DNA of 64,000 nt from Saccostrea echinata (Eukaryota). Position numbers and translations under genes: made by a program. The first letter of the stretch is position 1, and each line of letters opens with the position of its first letter. The DNA is taken from the NCBI RefSeq assembly GCF_033153115.1, contig NW_026889797.1, positions 2,666,001 to 2,730,000 of the forward strand, read 5' to 3'. The notes beneath the pieces are model-generated. The model searched no databases, had not been told where the DNA came from, and saw nothing but the letters and a program-made list of their open reading frames with translations. Positions 36,451-64,000 of the stretch are shown one piece after another.

Positions 36451-37001
36451 AACCTAGGGATTGCTAACACTGACGGGACTGCATTCGGGGCAAGTATACT
36501 GAGGTACTGATTTAGCATAATCCTCACTTATACCCACACACCTGGGATGAAACTAGTCCCGGCAACTGTCGCACTGAACCATCAAACCTTTAGGGTTGGA
36601 TTGTAAGCATAAACAATACTGTCGGGTCTTAGCCCCCTTAGTGGCTCTAGGTCGTTTGGGCGATTTGGGTTTTTCTGACCTTTCCCTTACCCGTTTCCGG
36701 GTACTCAGATATGGACCTACTGTTTCTGATGGTTTAGGGCTGACTTTTGACTTAACCCTACTCCCCGGGTCCCCAGGACTTGACCCTGAGTCCGCGGTCA
36801 CCAGCGGTCTAACCACATCGCGCACAAGGGAACTATCCCCATCTCGGCTTACTGACTGTCCTGGCAACTTACTCTGATAAGTAACTAACCACTTGGGAAG
36901 TTGCCTGGCCTCACACCTCTTAAGCTTGTCAAGGTGCATGACTTTAACATCGCAACGAGATTTGACGACAAATATTGTATCAGATTTGGCTTCAATAATT
37001 A
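36451..37001 (-). pseudogene. Frameshifted integrase C-terminal extension ending in a PHD finger
   Basis: Removing one G from GGGGG at ~37002-37006 gives WKGPGVIIEAKSDTIFVVK..MHLDKLK..YCLCLQSNPKGLMVQCDSCRD*FHPRCVGISEDYAKSVPQYTCPEC (C4HC3; TAG at 36553 replaces Trp). Confidence 0.88.
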
Positions 37002-40000: not shown

Positions 40001-40282
40001 ATAACTAGTCTCCCCCTCCGCTGACATGCGGCGCACTGTGGGATCAGTATTCTTAACAGCCATAGCAGGAGCAGCTTCCCCTACTGTAGTACCAGTCTTG
40101 ATTATATGACTTCTATCAGTCAGGTTTAAGATACATAGCTTAGCTTTGTTTCCTGCGGCATTGTATGTCCGCGAAGCTACTATACCAGGCGGAAATATGC
40201 TAGCTGGTTCCAGCATAAATTCTGGCATATCGGAACTAAGGGTGCACTCGATAACTTGAGCAGTGTGCGGAGGGACCCGCAC
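36992..40282 (-). CDS. pol: Gypsy Pol (RT, RNase H, integrase)
   Basis: RT (WASAPVLVRKKDG..CVDYR, FGLCNAPATF, FLDD), RNase H (DTDASD, KELLAV, TDH), integrase HHCC and DDE (HLDFLGP, TDQG, VERYN). Confidence 0.96.
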   Translation of the reverse strand: MRVPPHTAQVIECTLSSDMPEFMLEPASIFPPGIVASRTYNAAGNKAKLCILNLTDRSHIIKTGTTVGEAAPAMAVKNTDPTVRRMSAEGETSYKHIAPLLDQLGKSAPVEVKTQAVELVKEFADVFAVDDLDLGNFSEIEHRIDTGDALPVNQRMRRTPSVFQGEEEGHLDRMLEAGVIQPSSSDWASAPVLVRKKDGSVRWCVDYRALNKVTVKDTYPLPLIEECMDTLAGNRWFSKLDANAAYWQIKIAPEDRKKTAFITKYGLFEFTRMGFGLCNAPATFARAINLVLHRLNWKIALAFLDDVLVLGASAHAHLDNLRQVFERFRAYGLKFKPRKCELFKPKVEFLGRTVSEHGVEMGDQYIEAVRDWPVPCDVKGVERFLGFANYHRSFIPQFSRIAAPLYAVTGKSGFRWGAEQQSAFEELIQLMIKPPVLAIPNSTGHFILDTDASDHAVGGELSQVQNGRERTIGYGSAVLSSEQRRYCTTRKELLAVIKFTRQFRHYLLGREFTVRTDHHSLVWLMNFKHPQNQSARWLEELSQYNMRIVHRPGKKHVNADALSKDIPDTCQSYSTKIRVEDLPCGGCRYCRRAHGRWHDFNTEIDDVIPLSQLFEESPVRAEGQSAEGGNYEMLDPTLRQAIVTNTWEDVPLAAGAPELPSFEIAVNGVSSLSPEIEEVKPQVCQVSQGDTAGISLCSYSPAEMARKQNSDEAMVYLRQYLESGDLPTENDLIICSPEEKCYLLERDCFTLDETGVIWREPEDSDMPRRLLVPRSLRSEVMHFCHDIPSSGHQGIQRTKERLKQQFYWWRMVKDIKLYVKTCDICARNKRGSLPNKSEMKSYQAGSPMERVHLDFLGPLPRTDSGNEYILMMVDNFTKWVECIPLPSRTAEVTTRSAINDFFSRLGYPYEIFTDQGRNFESELFCKICTMLGIHKARTTPYRPSGNGQVERYNRTLMDAVRCYIDGQPKTWDRFLGPLAGALRSAVNRHTGYTPNRLMLGREVNILATLMFSPPPSQSFQNGEEGEVDRYVRDLEQNVQSAHDIARKKLKVAQKAMKRSHDIKIRTHRFKVGDLVYWRRNAGKKVESIWKGPGGNY

Positions 40283-40467
40283 TCTGCGGACTGAACCGCA
40301 TCGAGTACTGGCACTGTCTCATCAGCACTTAGGGCGAAAATCGTATCTATGCCCTTGACCCTTAATGTACCGGCTTCACAGGAAACATCTGCACCGTGTG
40401 CACGCAGGAAGTCAATTCCCAAAAGCATTTCGTCTTGTAAGGGGCCAAAAAAATCGGGTGAACAAAA

Positions 40468-42894: not shown

Positions 42895-43093
42895 TATGCC
42901 CGGCAACCAATAACACGGCAAAATATAAATTTACAGGAAGCGGTTAATCCGCTAAGCAACAAACGCAAGTATAAACGTATATACAAAATAAAATAAAACA
43001 AATACTGCTGTCCTACATCTCGGAAAATATCCAAGATGGCGACGTGCACTTACACGTGCGGGCTAGGTATTACCCCGCAGTTTAAACTAAAAT

Positions 43094-43111
43094 ACCCTGC
43101 TCGCAGAGCCA
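43094..43111 (-). promoter_or_regulatory. Primer-binding site, probably tRNA-Ser(UGA)
   Basis: TGGCTCTGCGAGCAGGGT one nt inside the 5' LTR; its complement ACCCTGCTCGC..GCCA resembles the 3' end of metazoan tRNA-Ser(UGA). Confidence 0.75.
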
Positions 43112-43112
43112 A

Positions 43113-43405
43113 TATAGCGTTTCTCTCTACTATATGCTACTTATTACCTAAGCACAGTGACGGCGGAATAGAGACAACACTATGATAAAATACGCGATTT
43201 ATTAGTGCCCGCTATATACTATATAATAACTACAAATACAACAATGACGGAGCCGACAGAGACACGTCTGCACTCGTCTGCACTTTGCAGCAGACAACAG
43301 AAAAAGAGAGCGAGGATAGGTACACGTCACGGCAGGTGCGTGTCGTGTACCACGTGGTTGGAGGTAGCAGGGCAATTCTTGCCCAGTACCTTCAAGACCA
43401 CCACA
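43113..43405 (-). repeat. 5' LTR (293 bp, TG..TA)
   Basis: Direct repeat of 35575-35857 with an extra 10-bp tandem duplication GTCTGCACT(C/T). Confidence 0.97.
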
Positions 43406-44095
43406 CAAATGTCTTTAATAACATTTTTTCTGGAATTTTAAGCGCGTGTCACTATGAATTCATTCGGTTATTTTCCTTAATTTTGAACCACTATAGTCAT
43501 TTGTATATGAAATCATATTTGCTTGATCACACAATAAAATAGCAAGCACTTATAACATATTAATTTATAATTTATTAATTTATTATTTAATTTCTTTCTC
43601 TCGGCATGGCAGCTTACAGCATTCAGCCCACTCATAATTTACCTGCATTGTTACTATATAGCTAAGTCAAAACAAATGACACCATTCAGATAAAATTAAT
43701 CAACGAACATAACATGAAGAATTTCTAGATCTGACATTTCCTCTAAATGCAGATAAAATAAACAACTCCTCCATAATTACCTGGTCTAGGGATACCCATC
43801 ATTCTAAAGTATAAAGGTTCAGGACTGGTTGCTAGAAATTGATTGGCATTTAATTCATAGTATACGTGCATACCTTGTATATCTCTAGATACCTTGTCTC
43901 TATCTCGTGTCCATCGTCAAATGAACGTTCGGTCTTTTGGTGATTACCGCATATACCAGTTCGACAAAGACACTTTTTCATTCGAAACATTTTGGCAAGG
44001 TAAAATAAAACTAAATGTATTATTTAAAAATATTTTCTTTAAGGACTGGTGATACATGAACAAACAAAATTTGATAAAAAATTTTTGAAAATAAC

Positions 44096-44191
44096 CAAAT
44101 CTTTGTCGCTTAAAATCACATTACCGCATAGATTTTAATTTTTTTTTATTCTAAGTATCAAAATAATGTGATTTTAAGCGACAAAGATTTG
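44096..44191. repeat. Perfect 28-bp inverted repeat with 40-nt spacer
   Basis: CAAATCTTTGTCGCTTAAAATCACATTA / TAATGTGATTTTAAGCGACAAAGATTTG. Confidence 0.92.
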
Positions 44192-45154
44192 AGTAGATTA
44201 ATAAGGAGGGTTGCAAAAAGGTAGATTTTTGAACATCATAGAAAGTTTACGATATCTTAATATTTTAGAAATTTATAATTTGAATCATTTACAACCCAAA
44301 TTGGTCCAAAAATATATACCAATCCAGGCATTCATTTTTTTTTTTGGGGGGGGGGGGTCATCTGTCCTTAATTATGAAAATATTGATGATTAATCATGCA
44401 TAGGTAATAATTCATATTTTTTTCAAGTCAATTAATTGAATTTTATGGAGTGTATACAACAAGTTTACTTGTATATCGAGTTTAAGCTAAGTGAAAGTGC
44501 TTATCATCATTGAAATTCGTTATTATATGTCATTTTTTTAATTCATCATTATTTAATTTAAATGTTATTCGCTTGAAAATTTATATGCGTCCATTTCGAG
44601 ATATCGTGACGAACTTGCGACTAACTCATAGGCGGCAATGACCACTACATGTACAATATGCTTCCGATATAGAATGTTTGATTCAGTATGCAAGTATACG
44701 AGAACGTCAAGGACGAACCAATTTTTTTTTTTTTTTTTTTTTTTGGTCAGAGAATCCCTACATTTCTGCATTGTCAGCAGAAAAAATAATTAAAACTAGA
44801 TAAAGTTTCTAAAGGAGTTTTGGAAAATGGCCATGCACTTCTGTGAAGAAAATATTGTTTAAATTTAGATTAGGTACATGGAATACAAAAACACAGGTGA
44901 TCTAATCATAAGATCAAATTTAAAATCAAAATAAGTTTAAATATAATGATACATGAATAAAGTGGATCCCTGCTGTGGCGGGCCTTATTGCACAATATAA
45001 ATGAATGCTATCCGTACCACTAAAAATTAAAAACATTTTTTTAAAGCAATATCTGTAATATATGCAAGCAATTGACAAATGCTTCATTAAGAGTGTCAGG
45101 TTCACACATTACACATAATACTTTAGACTGATAATGAAATGCAATTCTTACTTT

Positions 45155-48100
45155 TATAGCGTTTCTCGCTATAATGGCCGTGATGGCAATCAGAAAAATC
45201 ACCATGATTATAAAATTTGTGGTCCCGATGAATAACTGTGGGGCTCTGCTCTGCTATGCAAATATACCATCCCAGCCCAAGAAGGCTCTCCTTCTACTGA
45301 AACTCCTCTCCCGGCGGGAGGAAACTCTCCTGTCATATCCGGTCTCTACCTCTGCTTTCCACAAGAACAGAATTCCCTTCCGAAAGTCCCAGCCGAAACC
45401 TCCGGTTCCACTTCACTCTTATCCCTGATTTCTTCTCCTGCGGATCTTCCGCCCTCGAATACAAATTCACCTATTTCCTTAGACATGATCTGTAACCTTG
45501 AAAAACAGGTAAAATATCAGACATGCGCTTTTTAATATATTCATGTGCAAATACAATCTAACCAGATGCAAACCTTATCTTATACTTGCACATGCTCCCG
45601 CATCATTGCAGGACCCTTATCCAATAATCTAATGACGGCTGGCACTGATGGGAATGCATTCGGGGCAAGTATAGTGAAGAAACGACTTAGCATAGGCCTC
45701 ACTTATACCCAAACACCCAGGATGAAACCAGTCCCGGCAGCTGTCGCACTGTAACATCCACTTTTTAAGGTTAGACTTTAAACAAACACAATCATCTCTA
45801 GCCTTAGTGGCTGTAAGTCTCTTGGGCGTACTGAGAGTATCTGGCTTACTTCACCTTTCCCTCACTCGTTTTCGGGTACCCACGTTAGGACCCACTTGTT
45901 CTGCTGGCTGCGGGTCTCCTCTAGTTTTCCACATTCTCCCCGGGTCCCCAGGACCCGACCCTGAACTTGTAGCACCCAGCGGCTTAGCTATGTCGTATAC
46001 AGAAGAATTACTGTAAACCGATTTTTATTCGAGTGCGAAAAATATCCGGTTTCGCGGCCTACTTTAACTCCAAATATTAATCGCCGCGAACCATTTATTT
46101 GTATTTGTAGAGAATGTTTCCTTTGTCGCGCAAGAAATAAGAGATTATGCGAATAATAGTTGGTTTACAGTACCCCGGTCGCTGTATGCGGATTCTCCCG
46201 ACAACTTACTCTTAAACGATACTAGCCTTTTCGGGACTTGCATCTTTTTAGCTGGGGAAGAAAACTGCGATTTAGTTAGCGAAGCCAAGAAAAAGTTCAA
46301 CACCCTTCACCTAGCAAGGTACAGACCAGTCATGCACTGCCTCAATGTACTGGGCCTCCACCTCGACTCCGTGCTCTCTAAGGGTTCTGCCTAAGAACCC
46401 AACTTCAGTTTTGAACAGCTCACAATTCAGAAGTTTTGAATTTGAGAACATACGCTCGGAATCGCAGGTTATCAAGGTGAGCATGTGATAAAGCCACTAG
46501 CACTAAAACATCGTCGAGGAATGCCAAAGCAATCTTCCAGTTTAGCATGTGTAATACCAGATTGATGGCTCAAACAAAGGTCACGGAGGCATTACATAGA
46601 CTAACCCCATTCTCGTTAATTCGAAGGCCGTATTTTGTAATGGAGGCCGTTTTTTTTTCGGTCTACCGGAGCTATCTTAATTTGCCAATAAACCGCATTG
46701 GCATTTGCATCGGCATCCAGCTTGGAGAACGTACAGCTATTCCCCGCTAGAGTAGCCATGCACTCTTCGATGATCAGTAGGGGGTATGCTATTTAACGGG
46801 AAATGCGTCGCTAGTATTTATCCGATGCTCGATCTCGGAGAATTTTCCGAAGTCAAGGTCCTCTACAGTAAAGCTGTCTGGAAATTATTTAACTAGCACG
46901 AAAGTCTGAGTTTTGACCTCTACAGGCACATTCTTCCCTAATTGATAGAGAAGTAGGGTTATATGCTTATTACTCCTCTCCCCCTCTATGACATTCGGCG
47001 CACTGTGGGGTCGGTACACTTAACAGACACAGCAGCTTGGCCTACTTTAGTACTAGACTTGATGACTCCTATCAGCCATGTTTAGAATACACAGTTTGGC
47101 CTTCTCTCCTGTGGCAGTTTACATGTATGTCTGCGAAGGCATTATCCCAGACCTCAAAACACCGGCAGGTTCCAGCATAAACGCTAGCATTTCCGCACTA
47201 AGGGCGCACACGATAACGTGGGCAGTGTGCGGAGGGACCTGCACTATGCGGACTGAAACCACATCGAGTACTGGCACTGTCGCTTCAGCGCTCAGGGAAA
47301 AGTTGTCTATGCCCTTGATCCCTAGCATTCCCGCTACACATGAAACTTCGGCACCATATGCATGCAAGAAATCAATCCCTGATAGAAGTCTTGTAAAGTT
47401 CAACATAAATTGGGTGTATAAAATCGTAATCACCGATACGTAGTTTAGTTTTCCGAGGTACTAGGCGGTTATTCCTGCCCCCTTGCCAGCTATCCTAACA
47501 GTGGTGCTCTAAGACCTCGGGCTGAGGCCTCAATGGCTTATATACCACCCCAAGATTATCGTAATGTCGGCTGCAGTGTCCATTGTTGCTTTACCTGGCT
47601 GACCACCTATCTGTATAGGGATACGCCACGCACCTGAACTCATGCCTTGACTACTTGACCTGACTGATGTTTTACTTTAGTCGCATTTACATTCGGTTCA
47701 TAAAACTTGACTCTGGTGTCGGAGTCTGACGCACGACGTTCAAATTTTGCATTACTGTCAGTACTGTGTCCTGACATTTGTAACGGTCTACTGACCTTGA
47801 AACACGAGAATGTCTTCGACTCAATGACTTGTCCCGTACGGGACTGCGTATGTGACTGTAGCCCCTACTGCTGTCACCCGAGTCACTGCAGTAGTGATAC
47901 TGCCTGTCTGAGGCCCGATCCCGTGACTTGACACGGGACCTCTATCTTAGGGCACACAGGATCGCTCAGGTTTCCTCGGATCAGTGCATTCCCTACGATC
48001 ATTACGTTCCCTTTGCTCAACGTAAAATTTTTGAGAATCAAAATCCAAGTTCTGTCTGTAAGGACTTTGAGACAGAGATATACTGTAGTCATCTCCGCGA

Positions 48101-48460
48101 TATCTAGACACGGATCTTATGCCCCTGGGAGGACGGGTAACAGCTCGGCGACAAAGCTGATAGGCCAATCATCGCTTAATCGCCTCTTCCAGTTTACCAG
48201 GAGGATTATTAATTACCTGCTGCCCTGCCCCGCCCCGCCATCACTCCACCCAAGAGCAGAAAGAACTATTTCCTGCTCTTGAAAAATCTCTGGTGAGGTC
48301 TTTATGGCCACTGTCCATAACTCTGTCCCCCCATTGCTCTATGGCCTTGTCGGCTCCCTGGCAAATGGAATTAAATTCCAGCTATAAGGCGGTTCTCAGA
48401 GAAGTCTTACCAATCCTCTCCTCCATCCGGAGAACTACCTCCCGAAATCTTAACAGAACC
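45155..48460 (-). mobile_element. Decayed, internally deleted and 5'-truncated sister Gypsy element
   Basis: Same LTR terminus TATAGCGTTTCTC; colinear homology to PHD (45650-45770), RT (46270-46790), protease (47050-47660) and gag (48050-48460); RNase H and integrase deleted. Confidence 0.92.
46011..46170. mobile_element. TA-flanked MITE nested in the decayed Gypsy
   Basis: TA|CTGTAAACC ... GGTTTACAG|TA; Gypsy homology resumes across it. Confidence 0.85.
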
Positions 48461-48499
48461 GCAGCTAGGTTAAGGACTTCCATGAGGTTGAGCTCATGA

Positions 48500-48880
48500 A
48501 TATCACGTGACTTAGCTCCGCCCATTTTCATAATTATTCATGTGAAAACTTTATTCCGTGTTGAATTTTTATTTATTTATTTATCTATACTTTAAAGATT
48601 TGTTTTTGTGTTGTTTCTAATAAATTTTATTTGTTTATTTCGTTTTCATCGCTAAATCAGCTCTATAAACGTATTTTCTATGAAATTACCGAATGTCGTT
48701 TGGAGCTGATCTACGTCGGCTCGGCGCTTTCACCCTCTCGATACGATTGTCAACCCCGTGGCTGGCAGGTGCGTGGGAAAAGTTTGTCTGTTCCAGTGTC
48801 TTGATGGAATTTACAACAAAATTGTTGCCTGGCTTGATGGCAGATGCCGAGAATTTGCTGGACAGAGTGTTATTGTAAGT
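48500..48880 (+). promoter_or_regulatory. Putative promoter and first exon of a + strand transcript
   Basis: E-box CACGTG, GC-box CCGCCC, TATAAA at ~48664, GC-richer segment ending in donor ATT|GTAAGT at 48874/48875; coding status unclear. Confidence 0.4.
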
Positions 48881-49743
48881 TTACACTTTCATTTAGACTG
48901 TTTTAGCGTAATTAAATGCGTAATTTTAAGAAAATTCGCTGACTTGTTTCAGACCACGTGGTTCATATTCTTTTCTACGTTTCTTCTTTTTAAAAAGAAA
49001 TTGTATGATTTCTTTATAGTCTGTTAGCATATACTGTACATTTTAGTAATTGCATAAATGAATATGCAGTTGATATTTTGTGATACTGTAATACAACACT
49101 CAAGTTTATCATCAAGGAAAAAGTTTTAAATACAGGGGCCCCATATGGGAAGTCTAATTGTGTTGGATTCTTTATTCTGATCTGCACAACATTAATAGCA
49201 TTTATTTTTGCACTTTAAATGAAATATCCCATGGCAGTCTTTGATCCCACTGTGCTGATGATGCACAAATGTGACACAAAGAAGCACAGATGCTCTAAAC
49301 TCCGAAAAAAAATTGAAATTTCAATTGAAGCACTGTTTTATATATTTGCATTTGAGATACTTTAATTTTCGCCATAAGCTGACATACGGGGGAATCAGTG
49401 TTTCACAAACACATCTTGTTTTTCATCGGGTTGTGCAGTCAATCAAGTTGTAAAAGTGTACAAATTAGAAAGCAGGTTAGTTGTTTTACGTTTATGATAT
49501 CACGGCATGATTAAGATAGAGTGAGTATTAAAATGTCCGACTAATTATGATGCTCATTATAATTTTACCTTTTATATAGAAATTTTCATTTTTTCAAAAA
49601 AATTTAATTAAGGTTTAAATCAAAGTACATTCAAGAAATACATAGTTAAAATAAACTAATATTTTACTTGTTGGGGGAAAGGGGTTCTCCTATAATAAGC
49701 TAGCTTCAGCTGGGTGTATGAAAATTTATTTTTACCCCAACTC

Positions 49744-50142
49744 CAGTGTTTGAATTTACCTTAAGCCCGACCGCCCGAGATGCACAAATTTGGCTGCGGA
49801 CTAACAGATTTGCATGTATCAACCCCTGGCTGGACTTGTTCAAATTTTTCATTAATTAAAATTCATTAATTTGATTACTCTCTTCCAAATCAACTAAATA
49901 AATGGTATTGGTATTGGTGTCAAAGTGTTAAAAGCAAAAAGGTAGAATTCTTCAGCCTATAGATTCAAGATCAAAGTTTTGATGATCTGACCCCCATTCA
50001 CATTATTTCAAAAAAAAAAATAATAAAAGACAATTATTTTCTCGGGCTGGTAGATTTTTGGCAGGGCTGAATACCGGCTGATAGTTTTGACTAGCAGCCA
50101 GCCCTGCATTTCTAGCTAAATTTACAGCGAGTTTAAACACTG
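49744..50142. mobile_element. hAT/P-type MITE, 8-bp TSD
   Basis: CCCAACTC|CAGTGTTTGAA ... TTTAAACACTG|CCCAACTC. Confidence 0.88.
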
Positions 50143-50379
50143 CCCAACTCTATTTTTTTTTTTTTTTTTGTTTAATAAAATCCTGGTTTACGATTGGTTG
50201 ACATCTGTAACATAAAGGGGGTGTAATTACTTATACATGGTTACTTGAAAATCAATACATTGTCATGATATATAAATATATCATGATCATTCTTTTATAA
50301 CAGTTTTAATTAAAGCTAAACAGGAATTGTAAAAGGAATTTGTCCACCATATTCGATTGTTCATGTTCACGTTCTGAGG

Positions 50380-50745
50380 GCCCCTATATAAAGCTGCTTA
50401 GTCACTATTCAGTGTAATCAGTCGTCACCAGTGTAGATGGACATATGCTACACAGCACCGGGTAGGAAAAAAAAAAAACTATGTACTTCTTCTAATGCAG
50501 GAGAGTAAGATAACAAAGAAACTTTAAACAGTTGCACAGGTCAGTGCAGTATACAAACACAAATACATAACTGCAATAAAATGTAAACATAGGTAAGATA
50601 ACCGGCACGCACATGTGTTGCCATTCCACACCGATACCTGTGACAATAAAGCAGTCAGGTGTTACAGTAACGAATGCGTAGGGTATATCCCAGTACTGAT
50701 ATTGTAGATAGTATTATCAAAAATCTATTTACGAGTCTTGTTTAG
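50380..50745 (+). repeat. Dispersed repeat (copy of 17357-17735)
   Basis: See partner copy; begins CCCCTATATAAAGC and contains AG|GTAAGA. Confidence 0.85.
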
Positions 50746-50814
50746 TTTTAATCTTTTTAATTAAAAATATTATTATTAATTTCTGTTGACAATTAAAAGA
50801 TTAACTGTCATTAT

Positions 50815-51645
50815 CAGTCAGGGGTGAGACTGAAATCCGTCATTTTTAAAATGACGATTTTAAGCCATAAAATAAAATTTTTATTATGACTTAAACTCGT
50901 CATTTTTAAGAAAATGACGAAAAACAGTCATAAAAATTTAGAGTGTTTCTAAAATACCGAGTTACCTCTCTTTGAAAAATGTTAGATCCACCAACCGAAA
51001 AAAGGACAAAAAACATCGTAAACGAACTTCATTTCTCTAATACAGTTGAGTACAATACTGGTTATGTTGACAGTATAAATTTCCCAAGCAAAAATAAGAG
51101 TGGAAGAGTTATTTGTCAATTTATTTGCATTAAATAGGAAAGAAGACGAAAATGACGATATTCCGTCTTTTTTCAAAATGGAGGGTCTGGGCGCACTGAA
51201 ATATCTCGCTTGTTTTACGGGGCGCACTACTTTTTTATGGCTTTAACTTTTTGTCGAGACTTTTCTCTACAAGTACGTATTCTTCCAGACGGTGTACTAT
51301 ATGTTTTTATAGGGCTAAAAGCCATGTAAAAATGGCGAATTAGTTCTACCAAAATTCGACATTTTACCGCTAAATAATAACTTTCACCTTCCATGTTGAT
51401 GTTCTAACGCATGTGGTCGGCAGTAATTAGTGACCCGGATGAAATGAAACTTGCGTAAACACTCTTCTTTCAGCGGTGAATTCAAAGTTCGCTTTTATGT
51501 AACCAGGATAGAAGAATTAAGTTGAAAAAGAAAATATGACGATAGTAAGTCATATTGACAAAAATGACGAAAATACGTACTTAGTAAATATGACGATTAT
51601 CCATCATTTTTCAAAAATGACGGATTTCAGTCTCACCCCTGACTG
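50815..51645. mobile_element. Non-autonomous DNA transposon, 33-bp perfect TIRs, 5-bp TSD
   Basis: ATTAT|CAGTCAGGGGTGAGACTGAAATCCGTCATTTTT ... AAAAATGACGGATTTCAGTCTCACCCCTGACTG|ATTAT; subterminal AAATGACGA repeats. Confidence 0.9.
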
Positions 51646-51738
51646 ATTATGGAATTTTTTTGTTCTCCCTTTACCGATTTTTTTCAAAATTGTCTGTACC
51701 TTAATTATTACTGCATGAAACACTCCGACAATACAAAA

Positions 51739-52223
51739 TAGGGCTGTCATGGTTCCAAAATTTTTCGGGACAGGTTTCGGTTCGGTTCTGTGTTTTTCGG
51801 TTCAGTTCTTTACATCTATTTTATTCCTTAAATTCATGAAATTAACTTGAAAAATCTTTATTTGTTATGTTACATTCACCTTGAAAACTAATCTTTACCA
51901 TATTAATATCTTGACATTGGTGTTCAGGACTACTAGGCCAACTTGTAATTACCTACAACCTATCATTCTTGCTGATTTTGATAATTATCTAACCCTTTCG
52001 TGACAAGTGTTTTGTCATAGAATGAAGTAGAATTCAGCTGTGATGTTATGTTTATCACTTTTATCGTCATCATTCTTGTGATTTTTGACTCCATTTTTTG
52101 TATAAAAACAGATTCTAACATATAAACAAGACCCAAACCGAAATCCGGAAAAATGGAACCGAAACCGAACTGAACAACTTGGACTGCAGTTTTTGGTTAT
52201 TTCGGGGAACTGTGACAGCCCTA
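51739..52223. mobile_element. hAT MITE, 8-bp TSD
   Basis: ATACAAAA|TAGGGCTGTCA..GTTCC ... GGAAC.GTGACAGCCCTA|ATACAAAA; subterminal AACCG repeats. Confidence 0.92.
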
Positions 52224-52344
52224 ATACAAAACAGTATTAGCAACACAGAGTGATGTCATAATTAGACATTTTAAGAGGGTAATGTAGGGGGAAGAAACAA
52301 TTTTACAAACCAAAGCCACCTGAATGGTGAATTAGTTACTCAGT

Positions 52345-52470
52345 TTTGTTGTGAATGGGTATGGGATGACACCTGGTTAGTAAATTGTTTATCTGGCTCG
52401 ACTTCGCCCTGCCAAGCAGAAAATATTATATACTAACCAGATACCATCCTGTACCCAATCACTTCAAAAG
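52345..52470. repeat. Imperfect long palindrome
   Basis: GTGA.TGGGTA.GGGATG..ACCTGGTTAGTA ... TACTAACCAGAT.CCATCCTGTACCCAATCAC. Confidence 0.7.
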
Positions 52471-53789
52471 AATGTATACCTGATAACATCTGGCTTGCTT
52501 ATCATGCTTATGAAGCAAATCTCCTGCTCCAAGCTGCATCATGTGCATGGCAATAAGATTAAAAGAGAGTATTTTAAAAAAAAAAAAAAAAAATATTTAC
52601 ATTTGCTGTGTTTTTCTACAAAGCCAACTATAAAATTGATTTGAATGCCATTTTCGTGTATACTCACCGAGGGGTATAATTTGAACTAGTAAAATATTAT
52701 GAAATTCTAAGCCCACAGTTGTTTAATGATTTTAAAATTAAATTATAAGGGAATTGGATTATAAAACAGTGTAAACTGACCAAAACCAGGTTATACTCAA
52801 ATAATTTGGCCACGAATTTGAGTCGTTCCTTAAATATATTGAATTTATCAAATATCTTAACAAAATACATACATGACTAGGGCACAGATTGCAAAGCAGA
52901 TCATCCCCCCCCCCCCCAAGAAAAAGCTCATCCATCTGATATAAATTATTATTTACTTGTGTAACTACTGATACACACACAGACTCACTCAACTACACAC
53001 AACATGCACAAGTGGATTAATTACCATGCCTTTCCAACTTTATTGCGAGGGGAGAAAAACTAACCATGACAAATAGCAAAGAAGCAAAACATTTTATTGA
53101 ATCGCTGTGTTTCGGGCAACATTGATTATGTTAGCTTCCTTGCTCCGCGTTGGGCAATATTTCATCCCTTGTTTTTCTATTGTGACGTTATGTTTTATGG
53201 AAGTCGTAACAGTATCAATCAATCTTCTAATCAGAATCCAAATCAATTAAAATGTGGGAAAACTCTCTTTGCTGGTCAATAGTGAAAATTAAATGACCGT
53301 CAATATTTTTCGGAGGAGCTTATATCAATATGTTGAATGCTTCTCCATATAGAGAATATAAGGAGTATTCTTTACTGAATATAACAAACATTTTATTGAA
53401 TCTCTATATTACATCTTTAAAAATTGCATACTTGCATCTCTTGTCATGATGTGATGCATTCATACCAAAAATATATTTGTGTTTAAAAGCTGGAATAATC
53501 ATTTTTACAACTTTATATAAAACCTAATAATTTACACATGCCAAACAGTTGCAATTCAATGCATGAATACAGAAACTGTGATTCTTCCTTTCAGTTTGTT
53601 AAATGTAGTAAGAAGTAATTCGTGTTTTGATTATATACATACATATATATATATATATATATATTCAGATCAATCAAGAAAAAAAACATACTTTAAAAAT
53701 CAGCAATTACAAGGTAATGCAAGACATGTTTATTAGCGTTCAAGTCTGCTTCCGAGTTCAAACTTTGTGTATCGTGTAATGAAATATGT

Positions 53790-56700
53790 CTAAAAGTGAT
53801 AAATATTCCAGTGAACTAAGAGTTTTTCTGCAATTTTAATGAGCGGCACTGTTCCCTTGTCTTTGTTTTCCATTAGCTCTCTGTGTTTTTTAATTATGGC
53901 TGTCTGTAGTTTAGCCAATGCTGCATCATAGGAGTTTCTAAAAAATGAGTCATTTGTGCTTTTCAGAATCCTCCGATACTTTAAAAACTCTTTGAAAGTT
54001 GGATCATCGCATGGCAGAAGTGCTGTAACCATGGAGACAGTTGATTCTGTATCTAGTAATGTATAAAAAAAAAAATTCTTAAAAAAAATATTTTAAATTT
54101 TGAAAACTGATAAATGAAAAAATATAATCTGTATTTCATAAATAAACTTTGCGATATATACCTTTTACTTCTGTAAAGAGCTTTCTTTTGCATGTCTTTT
54201 TTGTGCAAGAGTCATCTGAAATGTTGCACACTTTAATAGTTATTGCCATTATTTGTCAAATTTGTTATTAAAGATGTCTTTATAATCATAATAATTGGTC
54301 CTGCTATTTACTGGCAGTATCACAAGCCTTGGGATTCAAGGGGTAAAAAAAATACTCCAGTTTGTTGGTCTGATTTAAGTGATATAAATACCTGTTGACA
54401 GTATAAAAATGGCTATACTTATTCAAATACTTTCAGACAGGAATATTGTGTACTCCAGCTGTTGTCCTTATCTTACCTGCTGTGGAATTTTTGACTTTTT
54501 CCAGACCACATGTGTTTCTTACAGCGAGAAATCCAGCTTGATGACTCTCTACAAAAAAGTAAGCTATCATTAGTTTTTAGCTCACCTGAGCCAAAGGCTT
54601 CTGATGGAAGAGTGTCTGTCGTTCGTCGTCTGTAAACTCTTCACATTGACAACTTTTCCTCAAGAACCGCTGGGTCAATTTCAACCAAACTTGCCATAAA
54701 GCATCCATGGGTAACAACAACCAGGGGTAAGGCGGGGTCAAAATATTGGGTCAGTGTTTCATAGAAACATATACAGGGTTCGAAATTCACTATATACCAC
54801 TCGCAAAACGCGAATTAGAATATCAAAATTGCGAGTTGAAAATGTAACTCGCAAAAACTTGCGAGTTGATTTTTTAACTAGATTTTACAAGATTAAACCA
54901 AGAAAAACTTTGGAAAAAACATGCATTTAAAGTGACCCAAAATTATATAATAAAATTGGTATTTTACAGAACAAAATGCTTTTGATTTAACTCAATATAA
55001 TATAAATAAAACACAGTGAGACTAATGCAGTTTTATTTTGTTTATTTAACAGCAGCTACTTTATCCTTAAGTTACATGTATTTAATTTTAGATTTAAAAA
55101 AGCTTTTATTTTAAAATTGCGAGTAGTCTTGTGAAATTGCGAGTTCACTTTTTTGTTACTCGCAATTATTTGCGAGTTGTATTTTTAGGGAGTTTCTATC
55201 CCTGCATATAGGTGTAATGGTTAAGGGGCATTTGAGTAAAACGCATTGAAGACTACAGATAATGGAATGACCTGACAACCCTTGGAATGGACTAGCCAAA
55301 CCAAAGGGTATATAAGGAAAAGCTTTGGGAAAATCAGGCATTTAGAAACTAGCTGAAGAAGTAGGATGTTGAATCAGCAATGAAGAAGTTAGGTATTCCA
55401 TCCCTAACAGCAATAAATTCAATGAAATTGAATACATAACAGATGTGTAAGTATTGAATACTCAGTATATTTAGACATAATTCCCATTTATAAGTATTTA
55501 TTGATATTCTGGGGGTAGGTGGGGCCACAATAGGGAATCAAATTTACTAAATACAAGAATATATATGAAAAAAAATATTTTAAAATCTCAAGCACAGTAA
55601 GGCCATGATAAGCCATATTTAAAACATGGAAGCATCCTATAATAGTGTAAAATCAAGTTTGTTCAAATCATGGCCTCTCAGGGGTAGGGTGGGTCCAAAA
55701 TGCTTTATGTAGGAATATATAAGGAAGAGTCCTTAGATCCATATTTGCTGAAACCTTGAACCCCAGGGTTAGGGTGGGGCCACAATAGATGATCCAGGGT
55801 TGGAAATTATAGCCTGCCTGACCATCTGGCAGTCTGTTTCTCAGGCGGGCCGGGATGAAACCTCAGATGACAGCCCAGTGATCGAGCTAATTTTAATAGC
55901 CAGTTCCTTAGTGTACTTGACATGAATTAATCTTTTTTTTTATTCATCTGAATTATTTTCATCTTATTCCTACCTGTAAACTTTACAATATTTTTAATAT
56001 AGGCAGATTAAAATCAGCAGTGCTTTGCATTTTTCTACTTTCGTTTTTAAAAACGATCTATATATATAGCCAGAGACATTTATATGTCTCTGATATGGCT
56101 TCTGATTTTATTGCTTGTTTATCATTTCATTTTATTTAATCTTGCTTTTTAATGAAATGATAATTTACCCTAAATCTATGTGTTCATCTTGCATACCCCT
56201 TCAGGTTGTCAATAAATAGTTTAAATCCCTTTAACTGCTCCAGGCTAAGATACCTGTACCTGGACAGCTGTGTGCGTCCAAGCGAGAAGTGATTTTCATG
56301 TTTCAATTAACACCTGCATGCATTAAACAACCTATATGTATTATTTATTCAAATAAACAAACCTGATATTCTTATCCCGATTGACAAAATATGACAGTCG
56401 GGAAACTCAGAAAAATCTGAAATTTCAGGGTGAAAATTTTAGGTCAATTTTGCTTTCCCGATCGGGAACAGCTGTTTTACAAAATTTATAATACATTCAT
56501 AATAATGAACATTTTTATCAGGACTGGCAGATTTTGAGCAGAGCTGGTAATTTTTAAACGAAGCCAGTCCTGTAGCTAGCTGCTATTTTCAGTGAGTTTC
56601 CAACCCTGGATGATCACAGTTTTACATTGTATATTATATGTATTTTTTTTTGAAGACCTTCTTCTCTGAAGAACATCAAAGCTATGATTATTATATGGAA

Positions 56701-59700
56701 GTATCCTCTGGTAGTTTAAATTCAATTTTATTCAAATCATATAAAGGATATGCAGTGTCACGCTCATATTTAATCAGAAGTATTTCATGTGATAAACAGT
56801 TGAGATTGTGTTAAGTTTGAAAAAATACTTTCATGGATTAACTGCATAAATAGATTTAGAAAAACTATTAACCTGTTTTCTTAACTTCACTTTTCAGTTT
56901 TGTGTCTATATCAGGAGTTGGAGCTGATTCCTGTTTTTCTGATACACACCCCTTGATCCGTGCTTCCCCCGTGCCATGTGGAGCATCTTGAAGGCACACT
57001 TAAGAAATCATCCAAAAAAAATCAATGAGTATATGTTTGATATAAAAGAAAAACAGAAGTGTTCAGTAGATGTATGGGATATTTTAGGGGGAAATAAATT
57101 GCAAAATATTTTACAAGTACAGTGTGATCTCACAATTTCAAATCAACTTTTGGTAAGAAAATGGGAAGACCTTATCTTTAACATCAGTTGTTGTTTTAAA
57201 GACTTTCAGAAAGGTTTATTTTTTTGGTTGGTTTTTATTCATTTCATATTAACTTTGTAGAACTACCTGAATTCTGAGTGTCACTTGTGCTTTGAACTAC
57301 ATTTGGATATGAAATCAGCTCCTGCTGCAGTGATCCTGCATCAATGGATGGACCACCTTCATCAGTATGTGTCTCCATTATGATTTTAGAAATCTCTGCA
57401 ATGTATATAAATAGTTCATACATAAACATGTACCTGTGGAAATGGTATATACTTTAGGAGTCATACTCATACTTGTCACAAAAATGGCATTTGGGCAAGT
57501 TCAAGGTAACTGACAGAAAAAAATGCTAATTTTGTATAATTACTTTAGATGTAGTTTACTTATAAAGTGTGTGGTAAGCTACGGCATTCAACTGAGCAAT
57601 GAATCATTAGTATTTAAAAATATAGTATCGTAAATGCAACAGTGTGTGTAATCAAATTGAATATCGTGCATTAGCGTGTTATGAAAATTTGTTTCATGAA
57701 CCATTGCAGTTACAAGACTATATCTTTCAAAAAGTAATGATTCATTGCTAATATTTACTTTTTTTTTAATTCTCTGCCTTGACTGCAAATGTGATTTATA
57801 TTTCAAAACTATGTATTATCCTTTGTGTAAGCTACTATTAATGGAAGAACCAATGTAACAGTTTCTGGTCAATGTGAGCGTGAATTTTGATTTCCGTTTT
57901 TGACGTTCTACTTCCTCGGTATTCAAGGTTTGTGATGTCAAAATAAAATGCATGCTTAAACCTTTTGACCCCTTTACATGAATGCCATATATTTTCACAC
58001 ACTTTATATGCAAAATTACAAGGGGGAAATCTGGTGAAGAACAGCAGGGCCAAAGCAACTCTGGTAAGGCACATGGGCTTCTTGCTTCATGAACTAACAT
58101 GGATGAGCATGAATATCTCCATTGTTAAGTCATAATTACCGTACTTGATGTCAAAACTGTAGTGCAAACTTTTTTGCTTTGAAAATGACAGTTGAATGGT
58201 GTAATTTGTGGCAACTCATCAGAATAATGTAGATATAAAAATTGAATTGAATTTTTGAAAATTCATTAGGTACATGAACTACGACGCTTCTCGCTGGCAA
58301 ATTTACCATTAAGCGCTAACACACTTCACGAAATATGCCGATGTGAAGCACCATAGTTCATGTCCTCATGAATCTTCAAAAATTAAATTAATTTCTTAAA
58401 TAACTGCAACATTGTGTGCAAATAAATTGAATAATGCATGTAGGGCTTTATGAATTTTCAATATTCATTGATTCATTGCTTAGGTCAGATTCATGTTTGT
58501 AAGAGAGGAACTTTGAGAATATGTTGATGTAAAGTTGTTGCTTTTGTAGAAATACCTGTTTCCTGATCTGCTTCTGCATGGAGAGCTCCAGCCGAATTGC
58601 CCAAGGACACTGCTTCTTTTCTTCTGTCTGGTGCACACTCTTGGATTGCTCTTGTGGGGGAAACTCCAGTGGAATGACCCAAAGCCATTTCTCCATTGCT
58701 TCTGCCTGATGCCCACTCCTGGTTTTGTGATTTTTCTGAGACAGTTGATGCGATTCGAATGAATGCTGAAAAAAGATTGAAATATTTAATGAAGTCAAGT
58801 TACTTCCAGGCAAAGGATATTCACAGTATACATGTATTCAAGTAAAGTCATAAAGGGGTAAAAATTAACAGTAATTAAGCAATAACATTTCAGTGAAAAT
58901 TGCCTAAGTTTTACTGTAAAATATGTAGTAATGCAGAATTTATCTTTTTTTTTTTTTTTAATTTTATGTTAATTGATTTTTTCTTGTATTGAAAAAATTT
59001 AAGTATATGTACCTTCATTCTTATAAGTCCTACATAGTTGTCCCTCCTCATGTATTTTGATTTTGTTCAGTGGTAAGCTGAGTTTTGATGCTTCACAATC
59101 CTGAACACACTTCTTCCAATCTTCTGCCAGGAGTCTTTGCTGGTCCTTGTCTGACAAAGACCGAAAGTGGCGTAAGGGAGGGTATGTATGAAAATCTGGC
59201 TCTTCAGGCCCATCATGGAACATAACTGCACCCTCATGTAAGGACCACCACATGTTCTCTCCACCATACATAAAATCCGAGATTCTCTGGTAGTGGACTT
59301 GAAAGAGGGTTGGTCTCTTCATTATGAAATCAAGATCAAATTTTGTATTTTCTGACTTAGGCAAGAGTTTTGCCTGGTGACTGACAATGGATTCTTGATG
59401 TTTAAGGTAGTCTTTCTTGGTCTCGTCCATCTGTTGAGCATTGTACCGTAAAACTGCGTTGTCAATAACCTTTCCACATTGTCTGTTAGCTGTATTTAAT
59501 GAGATACTCCTTAAGTCGCCAAATGATCTTTCCTCTTGCTCAGGGACTAAGGATCTAAGGCAGAACAATCTATATGTTTCAGGACAATGGACTGTTAAAC
59601 TGTGAAAGTGGCTGCCAAAGAACTTTCTGGTGGTCATCTTCTTTGGTATTCCAATGACAGTTTTTGAAAGGATGGAGAATTTAAAGCAAAGGTTGTATAA

Positions 59701-62158
59701 TCGCAGTACTTTCTTTGTTGTTCTCTGCTGGTATTCACTGTAACATATAGAAATGATTTCCACTAAAGTCATACAGAGTTCAGAAATTTCTTTGCTGATT
59801 TTTTTCTCTAAAAATTTTAGATGGGTAAACATGGCTAGCTTGACTGCAAACAGACGGGCATCGGATCCCTTGAGCTGATTTTTGTCCCCAATGGTTGAAG
59901 TAGCAAATTTTTCAAATTCTTTTTGTGTTGTTAAATTACCAATATGGCAGGGTAGTTCCAATATCAAATTTTGTACAATGTTGGTGATGTCGTGAAGAGG
60001 CTCGCAGGGTGGTATCTCATATAGGTGGAGCAAATCAGAAATATTGTTGTCGGTTGTCAGTAGTGCTGGTGGTCTCTGGATACCTCTAAGAATTGTTGTA
60101 AGTTCTTCCTGCATCTCACTTTTGCTTTTATTATGGATGTCATGGCCTCTTGCTTTTAATTCTACTTCAAGGTCTGACTTTTTGAGATTAGAAAAAGGGG
60201 ATGGGTTTATGACTGAAAATCTTCTCCATAGTTCTCCTTCTTTGAATATCTGCACCCGATCATCTAAGGAAGGATTCCCAATACTGTAAACATATTCTAA
60301 ATTTTGATGTTCTTTTGACCTTACTCCACACAGGCAGCTGTAATTCCCACCCCTTTGATGCCCTGCTTCAAATTGTCTAGCAGGGCCATCCCCACTAAAA
60401 ACTCTTGGCATATAACTGATTTCCCCTTTCTGCATTCTTAAATTTTGAAGGTCTCCAACCCTAGCCTGCATATATGAAAGCTGGTCAATATCCGAACTTG
60501 ATGATTGTCCAAGTATATATAGATATGGCCTCTCCACCTTTCCTTGTATGTCCACAGGGGGGCGCTCGGGAAACCTTTTCATGTACTCTTCATCAGTTAG
60601 GAAATTGGCATTATCATAGAGGGTACTGATCATAACGGTGAAGTAGCTGTGATTTAGTATGTCGGAGTGATCATGCCAAATTTTTAGATGTCTTGATTTC
60701 TCCAACTTGAGCAGCTTTTCCTTTGCTTCTTCATCTGAGCCTGGCATTTCTTCTCCAAGATTCTTAAAAATTGTCTTCAGATCATTCGATGTTAAAGTAG
60801 CTACTTCGGTATTTCTCTGATAGTCTTGATGATTGTCTAGCATGGCATCCATAATATTTTTTAAAGGAATCATTCTACCATACACTGTCATCTCCTTGTC
60901 AATAAGTCTTCCATTTTCATCTATTTTGTTTGTTTTGTAGATTTTAGGAGCAATTCTCTCTCCAATGTACAGTTCCTTTCTCCCTAGTTTGCTGTGAATT
61001 TCTTCTCTCAGTGCTCTAGCAGGTCTGGGGGTGGGTACAGAAACTTTACGAAAAACTTTTTGCCTTGCCCTGCGAACTCTCTGGAGAAAGTCCCGACCAC
61101 TTACCCGTCGATCTGTATTAAATTGTTTACAGTTGACACCATTTAATTTTGCAAAAATCTGAAGAACCTGACCTGCATTCTTTGGAATTATCCCTCGTTT
61201 GTTTTTTACCTGAAACTTGAGGGCAAGATACCTCCAGATGACCCTAGACCCTGGTGCCAAATTTCTAATAAATTTGAGGAATTTTTCTCTGTCGAACTGG
61301 TAATTATCTATGTTTCCAATATGCCTCTTGGCCTTCTTTGTCCCTTGTAAAATTTTTTTAGAATTGTCTGTTATTCTCTTTCTGGCAACATTTGGTGCTT
61401 CAAAGAAGGTAGATAACCTGTCTCGGTCAGCTTGGCTATATGATTTTCCAGAGGCAAGAAAATTTTGAATTTCATTTTCGTTGTTTCCTATAAGCTGACT
61501 TATAGATTTTGTGCTTTCTCTTGTGATTTTGATTTTATGTTTTCGTTTTTGTTCACTTGTGTTCTTCTCAATCAAGTTAAATTTTTTTGATACTGTTGAC
61601 TTCAAATCTGTGTTGAATTTTTTTTTCATGATAGGTTCTAACACATTGAGAAGTTGTTCTGCTCCATTACTGTTATTATGAGTCATTTCACTAACAAGTT
61701 CATTTGTTTTTTTAACCAAATTTTCTGCATTTTCTGAGGTAGAATTGTGTAATACTGAGTAATTGATCAGTGAGGTTTCACAAGGCATACAGTCATGTAC
61801 AGTATGCCTCTGTTTGTCATGGTGAGAAAGGGCATCCCATTGTTGGAGTGAAAATTTTGCTATGAAATCTTTTTTTTTCACTACCTTTATTGTTGTTTTT
61901 CCAGTACTTATTTTGTGTGATATAATTTTGAACTCGTGGTAATTGACGTACAAATTTGTCATAGGGCAAATGCATCTTTGGGTATTTGTTCATTACACTA
62001 TTGTAGAAATGAAATCTAAATGATGCAGATACATTTGACGATTTCTTATTGGTATCAGAATCAAGCAGTGTAGCATCTTTTGAAGACCACCAATGAATAC
62101 TTTCAGGATCTTTACTGCTACGCCCAATGATGACTTTGGCAAAATTGCAAAAATTCAT
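53790..62158 (-). CDS. RAG1/Transib-like DDE transposase-derived gene, 7 coding exons, ~1332 aa (one frameshift)
   Basis: Exons 62158-59013, 58765-58556, 57395-57267, 56998-56873, 54548-54477, 54215-54162, 54052-53790. All introns are GT-AG and phase 1, internal exons are multiples of 3 and stop-free. One extra A in the A9 run at 61870-61878 separates the 113-aa and 987-aa ORFs. Confidence 0.75.
54774..55204. mobile_element. CAGGG-terminus MITE with ACTCGCAA/TTGCGAGT subterminal repeats
   Basis: CATATA|CAGGGTTCGAAAT ... GTTTCTATCCCTG|CATATA (6-bp flanking direct repeat). Confidence 0.78.
55795..56608. mobile_element. CAGGG-terminus MITE, 7-bp TSD (P-element-like)
   Basis: GATGATC|CAGGGTTGGAAA ... 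TTTCCAACCCTG|GATGATC. Confidence 0.88.
58242..58392. repeat. Imperfect long palindrome
   Basis: AATTTTTGAA.ATTCAT.AGG.ACATGAACTA..GCTTC ... GAAGC..TAGTTCATGTCCTCATGAAT.TTCAAAAATT. Confidence 0.8.
59013..62158 (-). CDS. Giant exon encoding the RAG1/Transib-like catalytic core with SAP-like helices
   Basis: KIWHDHS (D 60672), FSGDGPARQFEAG..GGNYSCLC (D 60390), CEPLHD, HFHSLTVHCPE, PEQEERSF (E 59532); SAP-like FSNLKKSDLEVELKARG..KSEMQEEL; N-terminal HxxxxCxxC. Confidence 0.8.
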
Positions 62159-62264
62159 GACTAATGTTACTCAAACGTTGATGTATTATTGTTGACTGGA
62201 TTTATACATTTTTGCTATTTAACAACAAGTGTCCAATGGGGCAATGATGCACGATTTTTGTTTT

Positions 62265-62532
62265 GTTGAAACATTTTGTTGGCTCTTATGTTTGAACATT
62301 GAGGCTTGATCCTTGATTGATTTAAAACATTTTGGTTGGTTGCTACTAATTACACATTGAGGCTTGATCTTTGTTTGCATAAAAACATTTTGTTTGGCTG
62401 CTAATGTTGGAGTATTGGTTGACTACTACTAATGGAATTCTGAGGCTTGATTCTTGATTGAAATAAAAAATTCTGTTGGTTGCTATTAACAAAATGTTGA
62501 GGCTTGTTCCTTAATTGAAATGGCTGCTACTA
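62265..62532. repeat. Degenerate ~57-bp tandem repeat (about 4 units) in the putative 5' UTR
   Basis: AAACATTTTG..GG.TGCTA..TGAGGCTTGAT.CTT recurring at ~62270, 62325, 62383, 62467. Confidence 0.85.
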
Positions 62533-64000
62533 AATCAATTTCTTATACTCACAGACTATTATTTTTTACGAATACTGCTTGTTGTTATTCAAGGTCAATG
62601 TTGTTGTCAGCCATATTATAAAATTGTCTATAATAATCTCTAAATAAATAGTTTATTAAAAAAAATATAGCATGAAATTTTTTTTTAAAAATTAAAAACT
62701 AAAAAAAGGTTAATTTTTTAGTACTTCAGTTCCTGATTATTTTTTTTTTTTAATTTTTCCAGCAGTTTTATTTTTTTTCATTATTTTATTAAATAAATTT
62801 GTAGCTTGTTCTTGACTTTAAAATTGATTGAAAGTTTTAATATTGAATATTTTACATAATTTGAAACACCTTTGATATTGTTTTATGTTTATTTTATATT
62901 TTACTTGTTTAACTGTCTTTTGTTTTGAGATTTTTTTTCAGGACACAGTATATATGTACATGTAATTAATTTCTTAATTGAAAATAAAACATGCTGAAAT
63001 ATATTTTATATGTGTTTTTTTTATATGTCTGAATTTTATTAAATTATTCAAAGGTCTGATTGTTGCATACCAGTCTGTTGAATGCTCTATTCCAAAGACT
63101 AAGCAGTGGCACACAAAAATTTTATCGAGGGAAAAAGAGGCATAGATCCCTTCTTTTAAGTGTTGAAAATATGCACATAATATATATATCTATACTTATA
63201 AATTAATAAATTTTGCAAATAAACTCCGAAACGGATGCACCAGAGTTCTTACTTACTCCTCTGACAATACACTATATACAAGATGATGTCCGTAAACTAT
63301 ATTTAGATTTCACTCGCATAGTAAGTGTCGCACATTAAATAAAAAGTCTACTTTTATTTTCTATAAACAGCCATGAAATAGCAAAAACGTGAGTACGGTG
63401 GCGTTTCCGGTTGGCGGATCTAAGTTACTGGCAGTTTTTAATGAAACTGACAACAAGCAATCGTTTATTTATTTCATAAAACGTCATCACTTTATTATTC
63501 AATCAAAACTTGATTTAAATGATATAAAAGAAATAAGTTGTGATAACCGATTAAAAAAGGGAAATGTGCAAATTATTTTCGTCATTCGCCAATCTTGATA
63601 TTGACGGAAGCTTCTAGAACATCATATAGCATCGAGCCCGATGTTAAAAAGAAAAACGAAGCGATTGTACATGTAGCTGCATGAACATAAAAAAAGCTTT
63701 TGTGTGAATGGTCATTGAAGTAATGGTAAATCATTGATAACACTATAAGTTGTGAAAATATTTATATATCGAAAGACTATTACATATATGTAGTAGGTTT
63801 TTCTAATAAATTTATCGGTAAAATTTGTAAATTTATCGGTAAAATTTGTATTTTCCTTACTGAGAGCATCGTGGCAACAAACCCGAAGTACAATTTGTAC
63901 TTCGTAATAAACTTGCTTACATGAAAAGAGAAAATTAATGAATAAGGTATTGTTCAAATATAATTTAAAGATGTAAAATTTTGTGCTTTAATCAATACAT

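Follow-up and report, generated by a model that had tools for sequence, protein, structure and literature searches.

A 17-kb transposon of Saccostrea echinata with a RAG1-fold transposase, probably of a distinct lineage within the CMCT clade

What kind of enzyme is encoded by a gene that carries the motifs of the RAG1 recombinase in an oyster genome? The question was raised by a stretch of 64,000 nucleotides from Saccostrea echinata (hereafter the window), in which a first-pass annotation had recognised such a gene and read it as a separate RAG1/Transib-related lineage, either an active intron-containing transposon or a domesticated recombinase. Our analysis makes it likely that a single copy of a cut-and-paste transposon, giant in size (17.0 kb), spans positions 48460-65459, that the gene at 58999-62158 (minus strand) encodes its transposase, and that this enzyme stands for a lineage of its own in the CMCT clade, which comprises EnSpm/CACTA, Mirage, Chapaev, Transib and some newer lineages.

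The ends of the element were located with an 18-nt terminal motif known from a sister subfamily, whose four copies are bounded by this terminus. This motif occurs exactly at 48460 (plus strand) and, inverted and with one mismatch, at L033:2442-2459 (minus strand). The transposon body covers 48460-64000 of the window and continues for another 1,459 bp outside it, to the window-equivalent position 65459 (L033:2459). The left terminal inverted repeat (TIR; 48460-48485, plus strand) starts CGCAGCTAGGTTAAGGAC; of its 26 outermost nt, 24 are complementary to the right end. The termini thus read CGCAGCTAGG... at both ends and form inverted repeats of about 26 bp starting CGCAGC. A right end at about 63432 was also considered and was rejected as no TIR lies there. 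The dinucleotide AC stands directly outside each terminus of the window element, indicating that 2 bp of target sequence were duplicated (target-site duplication, TSD).

The sister element was found at four unrelated loci as a unit of about 17.1 kb, 96-99% identical between copies, the homology stopping at the same bases. The three sister copies with both ends are flanked by AA, AA and TT, so that the duplication, together with the AC of the window copy, is 2 bp in 4/4 insertions examined. Units of such size, with a low copy number per subfamily, could also be thought of as segmental duplications and not as transposition products. We give this explanation next to no credence, since different copies cease to be homologous at an identical base on either side, their flanking sequences bear no relation to each other and each copy has its own 2-bp direct repeat beside its inverted termini.

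Two open reading frames (ORFs) on the minus strand make up the transposase gene of the window copy. The main one (58999-61962; 987 aa) contains the RAG1-type core at residues ~157-850, and the other (61817-62158; 113 aa, MNFCNFAK...) is homologous to the N-terminus of intact family members. As the family consensus shows that the proteins of relatives start with the sequence of the 113-aa ORF and then run into the 987-aa ORF, the former is the true N-terminus. Alignment with the intact 1,051-aa coding sequence (CDS) of the sister subfamily revealed one surplus base in an A9 homopolymer (61870-61878, minus strand) of the window copy, a +1 frameshift which separates the two ORFs. This single extra base, set against the intact sister gene, indicates that the transposase CDS contains no intron and that the window copy has one break near the N-terminus. 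The gene, which had been taken to be intact and intron-containing, is neither. The frameshift may be a real mutation or a homopolymer assembly error, either being possible. The S. echinata genome showed no other near-identical copy of the subfamily to which the window element belongs; the window copy is a solitary member, probably disabled by its N-terminal frameshift.

We then examined the residues expected of a RAG1-type active site in an alignment of 40 family sequences reaching down to 24% identity, from which all conservation counts are taken. The first catalytic Asp, D431 of the WHDHS motif (60670-60672, minus strand, as are all codons cited here; codon checked), and the second, D525 of the GDGP motif (60388-60390), are both conserved in 40/40 sequences. 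The putative zinc ligands C543-L-C545 (60328-60336) are present in 39/40 and 39/39, respectively. E654-P-L-H657 (59992-60003), in which both E654 and H657 are conserved in 40/40 sequences, is the counterpart of RAG1 D792/H795 (D/C-x2-H) and of the corresponding CMC motif, the DGMH of CMC with which hhalign aligned it. H787-x4-H792 (59587-59604; 34/34 and 33/34) provides two further putative zinc ligands and would be the ZnH2 counterpart. In E808-Q-E-E811 (59530-59541) both Glu are conserved in 34/34 sequences; the E-x2-E pattern corresponds to E934/E937 conserved in RAG1-like proteins, and E811 is likely to be the catalytic Glu. The order D431, D525, C543-x-C545, E654..H657, H787-x4-H792, E811 is that of RAG1, and every residue that the first-pass annotation had picked by eye proved to be conserved. 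Apart from the C-x-C spacing (39/39), the invariant DDE, two Cys and three His of the family resemble the signature of the CMCT clade (PMC12730594).

An AlphaFold2 model of the window transposase (pLDDT 77, pTM 0.70) places D431 in strand beta-1 (model strand 423-435) and E811 in a helix formed by residues 807-822, while D525 closes the strand 516-524, with a helical insertion of about 280 residues among these three positions. When this model was compared with the PDB by Foldseek, RAG1 cores were the only confident matches (E 5e-8). VIA-align superposed model residues 157-850 on RAG1 459-1004 with Z 15.3-16.3 and an rmsd of 5.1 over ~456 residues. Scores were lower for the amphioxus RAG1-like protein BbRAGL (Z 13.3) and for HzTransib (Z 11.4), and lower still for the P element (Z 10.5), ISCth4 (9.6) and Hermes (7.3). 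When 48,161 representative chains were searched with no preselection by Foldseek, the ranking was unchanged, with RAG1 at the top. Retroviral integrase cores came next in that search (Z ~8) and aligned across residues 424-851, which confirms the split RNase H-like core. On the evidence of the model, the prediction of an RNase H fold of the RAG1 type, containing both the DDE triad and the positions of the zinc ligands, is borne out (Foldseek E 5e-8, best Z 16.3).

The insertion domain had also been said to contain a SAP-like helix pair. Such a helix-extended-helix motif is indeed found at 60082-60198 (minus strand; residues 589-627). The Pfam SAP model matched 6/40 family members (best 3.7e-6) and the family profile matched a solved SAP domain (E 0.012); the structural match of this region to the SAP region of 3'hExo was weak (Z 4.7). 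A second SAP-like pair had been proposed before the first Asp. In the model this is merely a pair of helices (392-402 and 410-421), and no sequence support for a SAP motif was found there.

Does the resemblance to RAG1 single out this family? As a control we used P0246, an ordinary bivalve CMC transposase (Pfam Transposase_21 and DUF4218), which was folded (pLDDT 81) and searched identically. This protein matched RAG1 with a Foldseek E of 1.8e-8 and with Z 15.7 over 469 residues, and gave Z 14.2 for BbRAGL and 12.3 for HzTransib. The values for RAG1, BbRAGL and HzTransib are thus 16.3/13.3/11.4 for the window protein versus 15.7/14.2/12.3 for the CMC control, which amounts to a tie. The fold of the window protein therefore indicates no special link to RAG1/Transib, only a place in the CMCT clade. 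A DDE core of RNase H fold, split by a zinc-type insertion and RAG1-like in three dimensions, is predicted for the window protein and does not discriminate between these groups. RAG1-like fold and motif order are the common plan of the CMC/Transib clade and no marker of a RAG ancestor, and the control set side by side with the window protein shows directly that to read such an ancestor into the structure is to over-read the fold. We also noticed that residues 717-870 of P0246 form a beta-rich C-terminal domain matching BAH domains (ORC1 BAH, Z 9.9; DNMT1 BAH1, Z 9.8), which suggests, from the model, a chromatin-reading module on this CMC transposase. The window transposase is without it.

For the Pfam and PDB sequence searches the two pieces of the window transposase were used separately, unjoined. 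Pfam RAG1 models did not match the window protein or the 40 family members at E<=1; among all Pfam models, SAP alone matched the window protein, its N-terminal piece or the 40 relatives. In particular, the 113-aa N-terminal piece had no Pfam match and displays only an H-x4-C-x2-C-x10-H pattern, in agreement with the distinct, RING-free N-terminus that had been noted from the sequence. Neither phmmer nor the family profile retrieved a RAG1 chain from the PDB, SAP-type matches being the only ones obtained. Alignment of profiles with hhalign gave an E of 0.01 (probability 4%) against an alignment of RAG1-like proteins and E values of 0.06 and 0.19 against CMC profiles, all non-significant. The comparisons among the three families (window family, RAG1-like, CMC) had E values of 0.01, 0.06 and 0.12, all at the noise limit. 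In both hhalign comparisons involving the window family, the second Asp, the two Cys and the conserved His nevertheless came into the right register. In the short alignment with RAG1-like proteins D525 falls opposite the equivalent of D708, and C727/C730 are matched by the Cys pair, as in the earlier alignment by eye, and D525 was likewise aligned with the second Asp of CMC. In sequence, the family stands at about the same distance from RAG1/Transib and from CMC enzymes of the Transposase_21 type.

Genuine members of both of these groups are present in the S. echinata genome. RAG1-like genes were recognised with 306 bits to PF12940 and include a 1,008-aa open frame (L034:394-3420, plus strand; G000:C5:333805-335655) with a twin at G000:C8:9399179-9401029. 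A BLASTP comparison of the window protein with one of these genuine RAG1-like proteins returned nothing (E>1). Further fragments of RAG1-like genes lie on C33 near 22.79-22.83 Mb. Relatives of these genes have a RING and all RAG1 core domains, the closest named ones being from Pinctada, Mercenaria and echinoderms. The genome also contains at least 62 Transposase_21 (CACTA-type) loci, none of which coincides with a locus of the window family. Many of them are open over 800-960 codons, and their closest named protein, from Saccostrea cucullata, is 90% identical. A search of the same genome for DUF1280, to which the Atlas had pointed, found nothing.

One alternative, in the sense of the first-pass annotation, is that the family is a specific sister lineage of RAG1/Transib, nearer to them than to CMC. 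It shares with RAG1, RAG1-like and Transib proteins (4wwx, 6xnz, 6b40, 6pqn) the fold over RAG1 459-1004 (DDBD, pre-RNase H, RNase H, ZnC2 and ZnH2) and the order D, D, C..C, (D/E)..H, H-x4-H, E-x2-E; the spacing from D to C is 18 versus 19 residues, and that from H to E 19 versus 23. RAG1 is its top structural match, the hhalign E of 0.01 against RAG1-like proteins is slightly better than the 0.06 against CMC, H-x4-H is spaced as in RAG1 and the same E-x2-E occurs at the catalytic Glu. A feature search of the Atlas returned clusters of RAG1 fragments (at 0.83), which we take as a lead only. However, RAG1, BbRAGL and HzTransib are matched just as well by the CMC control, every hhalign value is non-significant and no RAG1 Pfam model matches. 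Sequence homology with RAG1/Transib is not detectable, the Cys pair is CxC and not CxxC, and the SAP motif is inserted after it. The window transposase also lacks an NBD-type nonamer-binding domain, a RING and a Chapa domain. RAG1/Transib elements have a 5-bp TSD and CACAGTG or CAC(A/T)GTG termini, whereas the 17-kb window element has a 2-bp TSD and CGCAGC termini, and RAG-like transposons have a RAG2-like partner, whereas no RAG2-like ORF is present among the ORFs of the window element. A specific kinship with RAG1/Transib is therefore improbable.

In the CMCT clade a DDE triad with C(2)C, H(3-4)H and a third conserved His is common to EnSpm/CACTA, Mirage, Chapaev, Transib and the newer lineages; TSDs are of 2-5 bp, ends are mostly CA..TG, and divergent members have been linked to RAG1 by HHpred (PMC12730594). 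The 2-bp TSD of the window element falls within this range, and its termini are 5'-CG..CG-3' in place of CA..TG. CMC elements as a whole have TSDs of 2-4 bp; 5 bp is the rule for canonical Transib, some Transib relatives varying. Close parallels are found among animal CACTA/EnSpm CMC elements (Transposase_21 and DUF4218; TRC elements such as SmTRC1). These have an equal similarity to the RAG1 fold, the motif order D, D, C..C, D/E..H, H..H, E, and large elements with a further gene product. In the animal CACTA-related TRC elements the TSD is 2 bp and the ends are rich in C and not of the CACTA type (PMC1636069), as in the window element. The animal CMC elements differ in possessing Transposase_21, CxxC, H-x3-H and CCC/CAC termini, as opposed to CxC, H-x4-H, CGC and a SAP insertion in the window family. 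Chapaev and Chapaev3, likewise CMCT members, are found in amphioxus and molluscs. Chapaev is characterised by a 3-4 bp TSD, invariant CAC..GTG termini, an N-terminal Chapa zinc finger and sometimes a RING, none of which is present in the window element or its family. ESTA, Plavaka and Lanisha provide precedents in the CMCT clade for very divergent transposases that are RAG1-like by HHpred, with 2-bp TSDs and non-CAC termini; compared by their descriptions only, they are fungal or plant elements with C(2)C, and ESTA is TA-specific. Mirage shares the animal host and, also compared by description only, differs by its C(2)C.

Several observations weigh against placing the family in the CMCT clade as a distinct lineage. 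As no comparison gave a significant sequence link (hhalign E 0.01, 0.06 and 0.19), the placement rests on fold, motif order and TSD. Pfam Transposase_21 matched none of the 40 family members, the termini are CGC..GCG and not the usual CA..TG or CAC..GTG, and the Cys spacing is CxC and not CxxC. The same features, namely the strict C-x-C, the CGC..GCG termini, the internal SAP motif and the failure of Transposase_21 to recognise the family, set it apart from the described lineages, some of which were compared by description only. The opposite possibility is that the family belongs to an already named group, either Mirage or an animal CACTA/EnSpm group curated in Repbase, and is new only in lacking a Pfam model. 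Oyster and amphioxus repeats have been heavily curated, a family as large as this one is unlikely to have been overlooked, and a 2-bp TSD is given for Mirage in the Repbase classification and also fits TRC elements. Against this, PMC12730594 attributes C(2)C to all the CMCT lineages that it compares, among them Mirage, and CA..TG ends to most, whereas the family has CxC in 39/39 sequences and CGC termini; every database name of a member is 'uncharacterised', and full-text literature searches found no description of such a family. We consider membership of a named group a real but minority possibility.

How widespread is the family, and does it behave as a transposon or as a host gene? Relatives, in every case named 'uncharacterised', are found in three Branchiostoma species and in Mytilus, Magallana, Saccostrea and Argopecten, and an exhaustive search gave 2,643 clusters (50% identity) at E<=1e-3. 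The best Atlas cluster for the family is cnidarian and has a SAP motif, which is a lead only. In the S. echinata genome itself there are at least 65 matches to the window protein, with identities of 29-74%; the reading frame of some stays open for over 1,000 codons, whereas others are riddled with stops. The sister-subfamily transposase is 70% identical to the window copy in protein and about 68-69% in DNA, and intact 1,051-aa ORFs are present in 2/4 sister copies. Copy number and dN/dS had been proposed as a check in the first-pass annotation. Pairwise dS among the sister copies is 0.006-0.07 with a dN/dS of about 0.5; between the window copy and the sister subfamily dN is 0.24 and dS is saturated, corresponding to long-term purifying selection. 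From these sequence comparisons, the sister subfamily is young and probably still mobile. The multiple matches, both open and decayed, together with the young sister copies, indicate a transposon family that is old and has diversified but is in part still young, and not a domesticated gene. Strong purifying selection between paralogues and long open frames at many loci are what a domesticated host recombinase would also show. Such an origin of the window gene is nevertheless very unlikely, as the gene lies, frameshifted, inside a TIR-bounded element with a TSD and belongs to a multi-copy family with many decayed, stop-containing copies and with young, near-identical copies at unrelated loci. 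Of the two alternatives first offered, the transposon is thus retained, on the basis of its TIRs, TSD and copy number, and domestication is not.

These results document a large animal transposase family that has neither a Pfam model nor a functional name in protein databases, with the complete boundaries of its element, its TSD, intact copies that are apparently young and an accessory exon that is conserved. The description can be used for repeat annotation of bivalve and amphioxus genomes, and the family offers comparative work on RAG-type DNA cleavage a natural variant with a CxC zinc site, an internal SAP motif and CGC ends. More tentatively, the family may be an unnamed CMCT branch of superfamily rank, occurring in bivalves, amphioxus and perhaps cnidarians and defined by CxC, SAP, CGCAGC termini, a 2-bp TSD and elements of giant size with two genes, some of its members probably being mobile still; we see this as possible and no stronger. 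If true, it would give a third independent view, beside Transib and CMC proper, of the diversification of the RAG1-type cleavage machine.

The predicted architecture suggests how such a transposase may act. Helical modules for DNA binding and dimerisation would be followed by an RNase H-like catalytic domain (D431, D525, E811), split by the large helical insertion that carries the putative zinc site (C543, C545, H787, H792) and the E..H motif. The N-terminal H-x4-C-x2-C-x10-H region and the inserted SAP motif may bind the CGCAGC... termini. By the precedents of RAG/Transib and hAT, two subunits would pair the element ends, and the DDE site would carry out metal-dependent nicking and strand transfer. 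Integration staggered by 2 bp would produce the 2-bp duplication that is observed, and excision, by analogy with RAG/Transib, would probably leave hairpins on the flanking DNA.

The rest of the 17.0-kb element was searched for further functional sequences. A conserved open exon of 100 codons, with no start codon and ending in a stop, lies at 53793-54092 on the minus strand, as does the transposase, and is 67% identical to its counterpart in the sister element. A genome search with this exon gave 28 matches; of these, at least 19 share the strand of a transposase match and follow it downstream at a distance of 5-15 kb. The exon is the terminal one of a second, putatively spliced gene of the element. 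An RNase_T assignment (Pfam E 0.019) was rejected for it as the sister exon is without this match; no Kelch signal was detected in the exon, and the Atlas search with it returned nothing. No other ORF of at least 130 aa was found in the window element. As to a RAG2-like partner, the long extra frames of the sister element are only low-complexity and His-rich, and a multi-exon gene would escape an ORF search. The left subterminal region (48460-49245) is conserved with the sister subfamily at the DNA level: tblastx matched the left ~800 bp in all six frames at ~75-90% identity, compared with only ~68-69% in DNA for the transposase CDS. This region is probably cis-acting; alternatively, its conservation could result from recombination between the subfamilies. 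No subterminal repeat array or notable tandem repeats were found in the element, and Rfam detected no RNA family in 48000-64000.

Some features are peculiar to individual copies or to the surroundings of the element. The sister element at G000:C33:7782571-7799679 has long low-complexity frames at ~7600-8400 and ~10800-11300, His/Asp-rich on one strand and Val/Met-rich on the other and repeated twice, which are absent from the window copy. The sister copy around 16.40-16.42 Mb on C5 has an insertion of ~2.2 kb near one end when compared with the other three copies. The copy at 13.33 Mb on C5 is more diverged (96%) and is without the outermost bases of both ends. Directly to the left of the window element, positions 36001-48000 have a G+C content of 0.45-0.50, versus ~0.32, and the 17-kb transposon may have inserted at the edge of this high-G+C block.

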